64,000 nt of DNA from Octopus sinensis (lineage: Eukaryota), in contig NC_043011.1 in the NCBI RefSeq assembly GCF_006345805.1, forward strand, positions 34,546,464 to 34,610,463, given 5' to 3'. The notes under the pieces were generated by a model. The model worked only from the letters and a program-made list of their open reading frames with translations. It searched no databases and was not told where the DNA came from. The position numbers and the translations under genes are program-made. Positions within the stretch are counted from its first letter, which is position 1. Every line of letters starts with the position of its first letter. Below are positions 1,114 to 56,887 of the stretch, in pieces.

Positions 1114-4100
1114 ATGAAGCTCGTCCTTTTGTGTTTAGTGTTGCTTCCCATCGTCTTCTCCGCCAGCCTCTATGATGAGGAGGTCGACAAAAGACTTTCA
1201 AGTAAGTAAAAGCAAATCCTTATATAAACATTTTGTGTATCAGAATGACAGTTATGATATTGTTGTTGTTGTTTAACCCTAGGTCAACGCTGGTCGGGCA
1301 GATTTGCCTTTTACCAAAAGTTTTTGCAGCTGTGACAAAATAATGGTCTTCTCGAATTTGCTAGTCCATCACGCTTACAATAATAATGTTTGAGACGGTA
1401 GCCTAGCAGAATCGTTAGCATGCTAAACAAAATGATTAGCGGCATTACTTCCGGGTTTATATTCTGAGTTTAAATTCTGCCGAGTTCTACTTTGCTTTTC
1501 ATCATGTTAGTGTTGATAAAATAAGTACCAGTTGAGCACGGGGCTCAATGTAATCGACTAGTCCCTTCTCCTAAAATTTCAGGCTTTTTACCAATTGTAG
1601 ATAGTATTATTACTATTATTATTCTAGTTGTCATATTTTTATTGCGTGCTTCAACTGTGCAACCAATCGCATTTCTGTATTTGTTGTAGGAAATTAGTAA
1701 TAATGGTACACCACACTCACAGGACAGATGGAATAACCTAGTCACTATAAACGAGGAGAGTACATAGTAGGCAGTCAGAGAAAGTTGTGTATAAGTGTTT
1801 TATGTTATGTTTAATAATATCGGAAAATAGAAGAACAATTTTAGAGCACATATAACGGTTCAAATAATTGTAATGGTAGACGATAATTAATTGTTATGTA
1901 AATACATGATAAAAACGGACAGTTTAAAAAGATTAATGGTAATGCATGTGATGAGAGGCGCATGCAACCATTCATAACCCCATTATTGCATAATCATCTA
2001 TTCATATAGATGTATTGTCTCCTATGTGGTGTCCTAACTGCCCTTGTTTGCCTCACTCTATGTTGGGCCCTTGTGACTTCATTCTGTGGCTTCCTTATTC
2101 GATTTTCTTAGGGCTCTCTTCAAAGTATCGACGAAGCGTTCTGCCTATCCATTAGATCTGGGATGGTTTGGCGCAGTGGTCATATGTTCTACTGCGAACG
2201 TTTCACAAAATATTTCAAATTCGCTAGACACAAATTGCGTTCCATTGTCAGACACTATCACGTCCGTGATGCCAAATCTCGCAAACAGTTCGTGTAGAAA
2301 ACTTATCACAGTTGAGGAGGTTGTATTTTTTTACACTCACAAATTTCAGACCATTTACTTTATTAGTAACCTTCCGTTTTTTTCTAGCGTCACTGGCCGT
2401 TTGGCTATTGTTATAGTATACGAGTTCGACTACTTTTCGTTCTAGCATTCAGTGCGAGGCTAGCTATCTCTGATGATGGGACGAAATGGTGAAGTCATGT
2501 TATAAGGTAGTGCCACACACGGGTGCGGACGGTCATTTCATCAGTCGACATAGTCAGTGATTAATTAGTATGCATCGTCAACATGAGATGGTATCTCTGG
2601 ACGTATACACCAGTTAAAAGTGTACTAAACAACACATCCAGTTTAGGTTGCATATAGTAATATCATTCGTTCAAACGCTACTAATTTATTAGTAGCCCGT
2701 CGGATTTTTGCGGCATCACTGGCTGTTTGACTATTACTATTATATACACATTCGACTGTTTTCCGTTCTGGCAATCGGCACAAGGCTGGCTATCGCTGGT
2801 GATTCACAAAATTGGTAAAATCACATGATACGGTAACACCATCCACCGGTGCAGACGATCATTTCATTAGTCGATATAATCCGTGCTTTTAGTCGGCGTG
2901 CTGGTAGAATCGTTAGCACGCCGGGAAAAATGCTGAGTGGAATTTTGTCCGTCCTTATTTTCTGAGTTCAAATTCTGTCGAGACCGACTTTACCTTTTTT
3001 CCTTTCGGGGTCCACCAAATAAGTACCAGTTGAGCACTAGGGGCGTTGTAATCGACTTAACCCCTACTCTAAAATGTGCCAACATTTGAAAACGACGTAG
3101 TCGGTGCTTTAATGAACGCTTATCGTCAACACAGGACGGGATCTCTGGACGTATTCTATCAGCGTTTTTCGTAATATGCGTACGATTTCTAATGATGGTT
3201 TTCTTTGTCTAATGTTTATGTGTAAATTTTGTTTGTGTAAAGTCTGCATGTCTTAAAGTTACATCATTGTATTTGTGAGCACGGTAATGCTTTGTAGGAG
3301 ATTATTCTGTTTATAAAGGCAGCAGGCCGGCAGAATCGTTACCACGCCGGGCTTAGCACATTTCTAGTCTCGCATACCGACAAGGTCGACTTTGTCATTT
3401 ACCCTTCCTCTATTGATAAAATAAAATATCAGTCAAGCACTAGACTCGATGTAATCAATAAGACCCTCACCTCAAATTTCAGTTTTTGTGCTTTTAGTAA
3501 AAAGAATAGTTAGCACACCAGATAAAATGTTTAACGATATTCCTTCCGACTTAAAGTTCTAAGTTCAAATTCTGCTGGGGCTACTTTGCTTTTCATCGGC
3601 TCGGAGTCGATAAAACAAGTACTAGTTGAGCACTGAGGTTGACATAATCAACTTCCTTTTTCCCTCAACAATTTGCTGGCCTCGTACCGAAATTAGAAAT
3701 AATTATTCTGCTTATCACTAAAACCCTGTAAATCGCCAATATTTCATATCATTGATTGCAGATTCGATTACATTCCTTACTACCTAACTTATGACGTCGA
3801 GAATGGCATGAATGTCATGAAATCTCATACACTTCTCCGTTATAAATGCCATATTGACTTTCCCTGTGTTATAATTAAAATTCTCGAAGTCACTCAATTA
3901 AACATAAAAAACAAATTATGTTCTATTTAGTTACATTATCTTAAGTTCTGCTGGCTTCCAATATAAAATGCCGCAGTTTTCGATTCTATTTTCCGTTCTC
4001 CGACTTCATTCTCTCTCTCAAACTGTTTCGATTCCTTCTACTTATGTTAAAATCCAACATTAGAAACATTATTTCAACATTTGTTCTAATTTCTCTTGCA

Positions 4101-55800: not shown

Positions 55801-56887
55801 TTTTCTCTAATTTATATATATATATATATATATATATATATTATATATATATATATATATATATATATATGGATATGTGTGTGTGTGTATGTCATGAAAT
55901 AACTTACCTTTTGCAGGCTAATTCGCACATGAAGGTCCAGAACTTTTTTACGTTATCTTCACAAGCTTGTACACATCCTTTACTCAGATCCAGTTTTTTG
56001 ATGTGCTCAATTAGGTCGCTGACTGCAAAATAAATTAGAACAAATATTAAATAATGACGTTTGCTATTTTGAATTGCAATACATTCACTAGGAGTCCACA
56101 CATATTTTTAGCATAATCATAATGAATCTTTACATTTTTGAGGTAACATAACATCCGGGAAACGAAAAACAGAACCGAAACTGCGGCATTTAAAATATTG
56201 AAAGCCTGCAGAACTTAGAAAGACGGAACTAAATACCACAGCGTACCTTGTCATTTACGTTTTATTAAGTGTGTAACTGAGACGTTTAATTGTAATACAG
56301 AGAAAATCCTGATGCTAATTATTGTGGAAGTGTTTATGAAATTGTATGACATTCATGGCTTTCTCGACGTCATAAGCAACGTAACATGAAATGTAATTGA
56401 ATTTGGTGATTTATAAGATATTAGTGACAAGAAGAATAATTTTTGTCTAGTTTTGCTACGAAGCAAGCGATTATTTGAAAAGAAAGAAAATTCGAATAAA
56501 TCAACGTCATTGAACAACTGCTACATATTTTATCGTCCTCGAAAGAATGACAAGCAAAGTGCTCCGCAATGGAATATGAACTCTGACCGTAAAGCCGGAA
56601 GAAATGCCGCTAAGCATTTTGTCTGGTGTAGCAGCCAATTTGTGAAGGCCATTGATTTGTAGATATCTTTGATAAACGAGCAAATCAACTCGACTGATAT
56701 TGATTCGGTGTTAAACAATAACGACAACAACAACATCATAATATCATATCTCTAATTCTTATGGACAAAATATTTCCAGGAAATTTCGTTTTTACTTACG
56801 TGAAAACCTTTTGTCGTCGTCTTCATCATAGAAGCTGGCAGCGAAGACGATGGGAAGCAACACTAAAAACAAAAGGACGACCTTCAT
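52892..56887 (-). CDS. Gene C: secreted four-cysteine prepropeptide, 68 aa; complement(join(52892..52895,55908..56022,56800..56887)). [68 protein letters not shown]
   Basis: Exons 1 and 2 have canonical sites and lengths. The last exon is placed by homology to the B-type acceptor (GAATGTCAG) and gives an immediate TAG, so it is less certain than exons 1-2. Confidence 0.8.

Follow-up and report, generated by a model that had tools for sequence, protein, structure and literature searches.

The window analysed here, a stretch of 64,000 nucleotides (C15:34546464-34610463) from a 2.72-Gb Octopus genome assembly of 13,516 contigs, carries six paralogous genes, which we call g1 to g6. They are genuine, intact and spliced. 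Each encodes a precursor in which a signal peptide and a short acidic spacer ending in Lys-Arg (KR) precede a 49-residue peptide with four cysteines arranged as C-x3-C-x11-C-x3-C. The family to which they belong is represented in this octopus genome by at least 14 copies, and is probably older than the split between cephalopods and bivalves. The reading that we favour, with a probability of roughly 55%, is that the peptides are exocrine, disulfide-stapled binding miniproteins with an external protein target.

We scanned the window (36% G+C) in six frames with a regular expression for C-x3-C-x11-C-x3-C, excluding the poly-Cys/Val runs encoded by (TG/CA)n repeats. The motif occurs at six places, all of them paralogous exons: 3945-4217 and 20342-20614 on the forward strand (g1, g2), and 55907-56107, 39448-39576, 11290-11418 and 27723-27851 on the reverse strand (g3 to g6). 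A further match, in a Cys-rich low-complexity open reading frame (ORF) at 17003-17389, is unrelated to these exons. In every gene, a signal exon sits 0.8-4.2 kb upstream of the Cys exon on the same strand. It encodes M-K-(hydrophobic)13-SAS-LYDEEVDKR and two more amino acids, with the consensus MK(V/L)VLL..LLPIVF(S/A)AS(L/F)YD(acidic)3(K/E)KR before those two residues, and ends at a phase-1 GTAAG[TA] donor. The Cys exon is preceded by a polypyrimidine-CAG acceptor, and the joined frames are open. Both coding introns are of the GT-AG type in all six genes (donors GTAAGT or GTAAGA, acceptors AG), and the coding sequence of 231 nt specifies a precursor of 76 amino acids. These results bear out what a first-pass annotation of this DNA had proposed from the letters alone, i.e., six intact spliced genes, the order of signal peptide, acidic spacer, KR and Cys-stapled peptide (6/6 genes), and the exact spacing of the cysteines.

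The end of the precursor required a correction. In the six genes, the Cys exon ends in xx|GTAAGT, and the in-frame TAA that seems to terminate it falls within this consensus donor. Annotated homologues of 74-76 residues from O. vulgaris and O. bimaculoides extend beyond this donor and end in, e.g., ILGKGDVN. Third exons matching these tails are present in the window for g1, g2, and g3. The third coding exon is now present in 6/6 genes as 1 nt, 8 codons and TAA, followed 51-54 nt further on by AATAAA. Alignment of the downstream DNA shows that its acceptor, TTTTCAG|T, is common to g4, g5, g6 and g1-g3. The first-pass annotation had given a third exon to three genes only and mature peptides of 41-49 residues; the length of 49 stands for all of them, and the 68-residue precursor with its 41-residue peptide is the product of intron-2 retention, because the GTAAGT donor holds an in-frame TAA. 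We rejected the idea that this stop codon is a special regulatory device, since any phase-2 intron with a GTAAG donor automatically carries an in-frame TAA.

Two of the genes lie on the forward strand. The signal exon of g1 (1112..1201) starts after the acceptor AG|AC ATG, has its ATG at 1114, encodes the signal peptide, LYDEEVDKR and LS plus 1 nt, and ends at a phase-1 GTAAGT donor. Its mature-peptide exon (4102..4216) encodes 38 residues plus 2 nt, with the TAA-containing donor at 4217, and its exon 3 (6021..6107) encodes the tail ILGKGDGN, with the stop ending at 6048 and AATAAA at 6102-6107. The exons of g2 are at 16191..16280 (ATG at 16193), 20499..20613 (same coding sequence as g1), and 22408..22494 (tail ILGKGDVN, stop ending at 22435, AATAAA at 22489); the products of g1 and g2 show a single difference, G/V in the tail. 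The other four genes are on the reverse strand. We place the signal, mature-peptide and third exons of g3 at 56800..56889 (ATG at 56887), 55908..56022 (38 residues), and 53049..53132 (tail ILGNSSEN, stop ending at 53105, AATAAA at 53054), and those of g4 at 40398..40487 (ATG at 40485, donor GTAAGA), 39449..39563 (INDLIQHLQKQDLSEGCEKVCHKEVPLFPDFFCKAACQ), and 38470..38556 (tail IKKTGSGN, stop ending at 38529, AATAAA at 38475). The corresponding exons of g5 are at 12489..12578 (ATG at 12576), 11291..11405 (LNDLIQHLQNLDLSEGCEKVCHKEIPLFPDFFCKAACQ), and 10540..10626 (tail IKKTGSGK, stop ending at 10599, AATAAA at 10545). The rapidly diverged copy g6 has its exons at 28747..28836 (ATG at 28834), 27724..27838 (LNFLIRYLQKQDLSEDCEKVCHRDFPLIPDFFCKSACR), and 26193..26279 (tail IRATGGGK, stop ending at 26252, AATAAA at 26198).

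Transcripts of a cuttlefish carry the same junctions. Two Logan RNA-seq contigs, L043 (SRR19578103) and L044 (SRR25158133), encode a family member with identical coding sequences. Five papers assign the first run to juveniles or larvae of Sepia esculenta (e.g., PMC9538352), and the second is probably of the same species. Intron 1 is removed in both contigs. In L044, an intron of 279 nt (GT..AG), which is spliced out in L043, is still present and stops 2 nt short of the ATG. Intron 2 is kept in L043, which ends in ..ACKM*, and spliced in L044, which ends in ..ACKIIFQQ* and continues to AATAAA and a poly(A) tail. Together, the two contigs confirm, at the RNA level in a cuttlefish, where each of the three introns lies and that the two C-terminal forms both occur.

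The octopus genes probably have a further, non-coding exon. All six have an acceptor-like TTTTCAG|AC immediately 5' of the ATG. They also share a conserved upstream block of ~180 bp that includes an ATATA(A/T)AA box and, ~46-50 nt on, ..TTCA|GT(A/G)AGT. We read this block as a putative promoter followed by a short non-coding exon 0, with an inferred transcription start. On the forward strand, it is found at 404..555 in g1 (TATA CTATATAAAAC at 500, exon 0 ending at 555, donor GTGAGT from 556) and at 15836..15986 in g2 (TATA at 15931). On the reverse strand, it is found at 57381..57532 in g3 (TATA at 57434), 44544..44690 in g4 (TATA at 44597, ~4 kb upstream of the ATG), 12758..12909 in g5 (TATA at 12805), and 29061..29207 in g6 (TATA at 29103). 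The locus had been delimited as 1114-56887, and the blocks of g1 and g3 fall outside this range. A motif ~40 nt 5' of the TATA box, (A/T)ATGAGA(A/G)(C)AA(C/T)(A/G)CAGATG, is near-invariant in the six promoters (e.g., 465-490 in g1 and 12840-12815 in g5), and its CAGATG E-box-like core makes it a candidate tissue-specific enhancer element. Repeats have been inherited along with the gene unit: a (TCTA)n microsatellite of up to ~112 units makes up most of the intron between exon 0 and the ATG exon in g1 (651-1092), g2, g3, g5, and g6, and each of the six genes has a (CA)n run downstream of its exon-2 donor.

Exon-wise searches of the whole genome identified 14 Cys exons and 12 signal exons in three clusters: three genes at C15 34.22-34.28 Mb, nine at 34.547-34.639 Mb (including the six of the window), and two on C8. 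Divergent queries against the same genome revealed no copies beyond these 14. One copy just right of the window (C15:34617763, L038) has the spacing C-x3-C-x9-C-x3-C and DMR in place of DKR, and is either divergent or decaying. The best protein matches to the window genes are in O. vulgaris (96% identity) and O. bimaculoides. Public databases hold about 15 entries of the family, all named hypothetical or uncharacterized. They include four from O. vulgaris (CAI9726847, and CAI9736012/13/15, whose accessions are neighbours on a single chromosome), seven from O. bimaculoides, and two from Argonauta hians. The genes had been described as invisible to ORF calling, which is true of prokaryote-style ORF lists, but eukaryotic predictors did call the 'hypothetical' homologues in three other species. 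An exact look-up of the 68- and 76-residue window products in a collection of 15 billion proteins, which may omit the records of this genome, gave no match, and a look-up of the P0001 locus was also empty. Several public models seem to need revision: those of Mya (L045 6001-6147, CP111020.1), P0011, P0014, and P0018 have N-terminal extensions read from upstream exons, P0003 is without the third exon, and P0005 and P0012 are mis-spliced and have lost half of the hairpin.

An exhaustive search of 1.84 billion representative proteins with a hidden Markov model (HMM) of the family gave just 11 matches at E ≤ 0.001. One of them is from a clam, Mya arenaria (WAR14592, full-length E = 2.5e-8). In the gene of this protein (L045), an acceptor closely precedes the ATG, a phase-1 intron follows KR and two residues, and a phase-2 intron, with a TAA within GTAAGA, is placed one residue and 2 nt past the last Cys of the hairpin; the last exon consists of 1 nt, 8 codons and TAA. 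The positions and phases of the introns and the 8-codon last exon are common to the six window genes, Argonauta hians, Mya arenaria, and the Sepia transcripts. The distance from acceptor to ATG is 2 nt in cephalopods and 3 nt in the clam. We scored the mature region of the clam protein with an HMM built only from mature peptides of cephalopods and obtained 22.8 bits, a value reached by 0 of 5000 full shuffles and by 1 of 5000 shuffles in which the Cys positions were fixed. The clam peptide has two additional cysteines, located in helix 1 and at the C-terminus, respectively. The orthologues of cephalopods span coleoid evolution, i.e., more than 250 million years, and the clam gene suggests that the family probably predates the divergence of cephalopods and bivalves. 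A restriction of the family to cephalopods is improbable, given the same exon-intron architecture in Mya.

The peptides are predicted to fold as three helices. AlphaFold, run on the full precursor with a 12-sequence alignment, places helices at residues 3-20 (signal), 30-38, 46-53, and 56-70 (pLDDT 62.5). Run on the mature exon with 17 sequences, it places them at 2-9, 16-23, and 26-37 (pLDDT 75). In the latter model, the second helix carries one CX3C motif and the third helix the other, with a turn of two residues in between, in support of the helical hairpin that had been proposed. The Cys motif is invariant in 24 cephalopod sequences, as are L15, C19, C23, F33, C35, A38, and C39, and conserved hydrophobic positions alternate with variable ones in a helical register. 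This pattern is consistent with a small domain that is folded around a buried core and varies at its surface. By analogy with the alpha-hairpinins, we expect disulfides between C1 and C4 and between C2 and C3. The computed net charge ranges from -3 to +1 for the 49-residue forms and from -4 to +1 for the 41-residue forms (pI 4.8-7.9). This shifts the range of -4 to 0 given at first, and supports the view that such low charges argue against a classic cationic antimicrobial peptide.

None of the searches for a named relative was successful, in agreement with the first-pass annotation, which had recognised no named cephalopod family. For five window proteins, Pfam returned within E ≤ 10 only an irrelevant ELMO_ARM match (0.091). 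For 12 homologues it gave no family match, with Conotoxin PF02950 appearing in one member only (E = 0.19). Profiles of known peptide hormones (eclosion hormone, CRF/ELH/DH44, insulin-like, etc.) had no significant Pfam match in the window proteins or in the 12 homologues, and a CRF/ELH-like reading of the N-terminus was dropped for lack of profile support in Pfam. The sequence-profile search of the PDB gave non-significant matches only, and Foldseek, which is insensitive for helical peptides of ~40 residues, found nothing usable in the PDB with either AlphaFold model. Text searches of the literature with sequence fragments, UniProt or GenBank accessions, and LOC106874479 identified no paper on the family, and general searches of the cephalopod venom and neuropeptide literature produced no description of it.

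Several known kinds of peptides resemble the family. Small Tims (Tim9/Tim10) are helix-loop-helix proteins with twin CX3C motifs and two disulfides. The spacing is similar to that of the octopus peptides, and a small-TIM chain is among the non-significant PDB matches (E = 2.4). However, small Tims lack an endoplasmic reticulum (ER) signal and a KR site and reside in the mitochondrial intermembrane space, whereas the octopus precursors have a hydrophobic signal and KR, and no Pfam zf-Tim10_DDP match. Alpha-hairpinins consist of two antiparallel helices with the motif C-X3-C-Xn-C-X3-C and C1-C4 and C2-C3 disulfides, and include antimicrobial members (PMC7191063). The plant ones (EcAMP1, VhTI, vicilin-buried peptides) share the Cys motif, which in the octopus lies on consecutive predicted helices. 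Yet, they are cut from vicilin or multi-peptide precursors and are mostly cationic with unstructured tails, in contrast with the signal/KR precursor and conserved N-terminal helix of the octopus family; the PDB profile match to the vicilin-buried peptide 7lvg is not significant (E = 2). The cystine-stabilised (CS) alpha/alpha toxins (kappa-hefutoxin and OmTx among the scorpion kappa-KTx, flf14a-c and vil14a among the cone-snail framework-XIV peptides) are secreted peptides of venomous animals, including a mollusc, with the same motif and the connectivity that we expect (PMC7191063), and among them the kappa-KTx and framework-XIV cone-snail peptides are described in that review as K+ channel blockers. 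They have 22-27 residues in two helices, whereas the octopus peptides have 49 and a predicted third, N-terminal helix. Their signal sequences are unrelated to those of the octopus, and neither Pfam nor Foldseek indicates homology. The likeness to framework-XIV conotoxins, alpha-hairpinins, and kappa-KTx that was noted at the outset thus extends to motif and fold, but not to common descent. Finally, OvSSCR is an operational class of small, signal-bearing, Cys-rich saliva proteins of O. vulgaris with no assigned function (Fingerhut et al. 2018, as cited in PMC7693380). As presented there, it is a category rather than a homology family; one member of the octopus family is in the same gland proteome and is not among the shared OvSSCRs named in PMC7693380. 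In summary, these comparisons suggest a new, unnamed family that shares its motif and predicted fold with known kinds, without detectable homology to them.

The history of the window is one of duplication. A tandem segmental duplication of ~16.4 kb (~1003-13469 to ~16082-29768, 93-98% identical) carried the head-to-head pair g1 and g5 and gave rise to g2 and g6. Apart from the one tail residue, g1 and g2 have stayed identical. Between g5 and g6, 16 of 119 positions differ in exon 2, against 25 of 1064 aligned positions in non-coding DNA (Fisher p = 5e-7). Fifteen of the exon-2 changes are non-synonymous, and most map to the g6 branch when g4 serves as reference. This points to a burst of change in g6, after the duplication, in excess of the local neutral rate. 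No other copy in the genome is closer to g6, which makes conversion from a known donor unlikely. The pair g4 and g5 shows the opposite trend (5/119 differences in exon 2 vs 177/991 in non-coding DNA), indicative of purifying selection. Between subfamilies, the signal exon is near-identical (2/81 nt between g1 and g6) and the mature region is saturated (dS ~1).

Protein evidence comes from a paralogue. It is A0A0L8GWF6 (P0009), and the corresponding gene of this genome, at C15:34280097, is 266 kb away from the window on its left side. This paralogue was found by mass spectrometry in the skin mucus of O. vulgaris. It is also protein group 23 of the proteome of the O. vulgaris posterior salivary gland (PSG), with 1 unique peptide, 23.5% coverage, a score of 25.7, q = 0, and an intensity of 2.1e8 (PMC7693380 Table S1). 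The group includes an ORF from SRR2047107, one of the PSG transcriptomes used in that study. By our own arithmetic, which is not stated in the papers, the tryptic peptide ACEENVAGIGEFFCEAACK fits a coverage of 19 out of 81 residues, and it is identical in the O. vulgaris orthologue P0014. The presence of the paralogue in both mucus and salivary gland fits exocrine secretion in general better than a dedicated venom. We ruled out that the genes are pseudogenes or artefacts of annotation, given their intact frames, their splice sites, the conservation of promoters and across species, and this peptide detection.

We propose the following course of events for an exocrine miniprotein. The 76-residue precursor would enter the ER by means of its classic signal peptide. 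Upon oxidation, two disulfides with the above connectivity would staple the two CX3C motifs on their neighbouring antiparallel helices. An enzyme of the furin or prohormone-convertase type would cleave after the conserved acidic-KR site. The product would be an acidic-to-neutral miniprotein of 49 residues, in which the N-terminal amphipathic helix is predicted to pack on the helical hairpin. It would be released from exocrine or mucous epithelia, one paralogue being known from skin mucus and PSG. It would then probably act outside the cells of the animal, with its variable face as the contact to a protein target, and not by lysis of membranes. Tandem duplication and subsequent bursts of amino-acid change would diversify the repertoire.

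Some observations weigh against this proposal. The deep conservation of the family and the purifying selection in some pairs would equally fit an endogenous signalling peptide. Both proteomic identifications consist of a single peptide, and concern a paralogue encoded outside the window. The Sepia transcripts come from whole juveniles and point to no gland. The sightings of transcripts and proteins are accordingly those of relatives or of a paralogue, rather than of the six window genes themselves. The confidence of the AlphaFold models is moderate (62-75), and the disulfide pairing cannot be read from them. The link to clams depends on one gene, and a search with the clam protein alone gave no more bivalve relatives. 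For the burst in g6, gene conversion by a donor that was not sampled is conceivable, although this genome has no closer one.

The first alternative is an endogenous neuro- or endocrine prohormone, from which a convertase would release a peptide acting on a receptor of the animal itself. The precursor has the appropriate structure, with a signal, a short spacer and a dibasic KR right before the peptide, and its gene architecture has remained unchanged from bivalves to cephalopods. Purifying selection between g4 and g5 and transcripts in whole cuttlefish juveniles are also in line with a hormone, and the KK or GK in some tails might be sites of further processing or amidation. However, these tail signals are not conserved, no Pfam hormone family matches, and the protein turns up in the proteomes of mucus and salivary gland. 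Fourteen tandem copies with divergent mature peptides are unusual for neuropeptides and argue against a typical one. We thus consider this alternative unlikely.

A dedicated family of venom neurotoxins, made in the PSG and blocking ion channels of prey, e.g., K+ channels, in the manner of the CS-alpha/alpha toxins, seems to us slightly less plausible still. The Cys motif and the expected connectivity are those of the kappa-KTx and framework-XIV blockers (PMC7191063), and one paralogue is in the proteome and a transcriptome of the PSG. The tandem expansion, the conserved signal joined to a variable mature region, and the non-synonymous burst after duplication are also what one would expect of toxins. 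Yet, the same paralogue occurs in skin mucus and the family occurs, with the same gene structure, in a non-venomous clam, and these two facts argue against a role in venom only. The octopus peptide has twice the size of the toxins and an extra N-terminal helix, with no sequence or Pfam similarity to them, and the g4/g5 pair and the cross-species orthologues are conserved. The paralogue is also absent from the toxin-like or short secreted Cys-rich proteins that the PSG paper gives as shared with an earlier saliva study. The first-pass annotation had suggested an undescribed family with a role in venom or saliva, defence or pheromone signalling, and the data do not discriminate between these roles.

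A water-borne pheromone or recognition cue, released with mucus, is improbable. Small, acidic, helical, disulfide-rich pheromones are found in aquatic organisms, and the octopus peptides recall the attractin of Aplysia and the pheromones of ciliates. They are computed or predicted to be small, acidic, stable, and helical, one member is in skin mucus, and the paralogues diversify within the lineage. Against this, members are found in the salivary gland and in juveniles, and the family is unrelated in sequence to known pheromones. A membrane-active antimicrobial peptide of mucosal innate immunity is very improbable, even with one member in mucus and antimicrobial plant alpha-hairpinins that share the motif (PMC7191063), because a net charge of -3 to +1 (pI 4.8-7.9) and a conserved buried core, instead of a cationic amphipathic surface, argue against membrane lysis.

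Beyond the exocrine miniprotein itself, we tentatively suggest a broader scenario, which is possible though less than even: an undescribed molluscan family of Cambrian age, expanded by coleoids into tandem arrays, whose products would be used in saliva and skin mucus as a new class of externally acting ligands, e.g., modulators of ion channels or receptors in predation, defence or chemical communication. The secretions of cephalopods are poorly characterised at the peptide level, and their known salivary components are mostly enzymes and large proteins. The family offers clean gene models, a predicted stable scaffold, and at least 14 natural variants in one genome. It has orthologues across coleoids, probably back to the split with bivalves, and first protein-level sightings in mucus and salivary gland. 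This makes it a concrete target for peptidomics of venom and mucus and for scaffold-based pharmacology. It is also suited to the study of divergence between tandem duplicates, which g5 and g6 illustrate well. The truncated or mis-spliced public models of this family show, in addition, that the annotation of small multi-exon peptide genes is inconsistent.

The remainder of the window contains a few other elements. A satellite with a 139-bp unit occupies 57782-64000 in ~45 head-to-tail copies (98% matching) and continues past the right end of the window; it lies between g3 and the next family members at C15:34.617-34.639 Mb. Transposon fragments are found on the forward strand at 17455-17859 and 32369-32854. 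One is an ORF with reverse-transcriptase RNase H domains (PF17919, E = 4e-26), and the other, probably Helitron-like, contains a Pif1 helicase 2B domain (PF21530, E = 6e-11). Within intron 2 of g6, the region 26782-27737 is rich in G+C (42% in the 24-28 kb bin) and has long overlapping Arg/Gly-rich ORFs on both strands, with no Pfam match.

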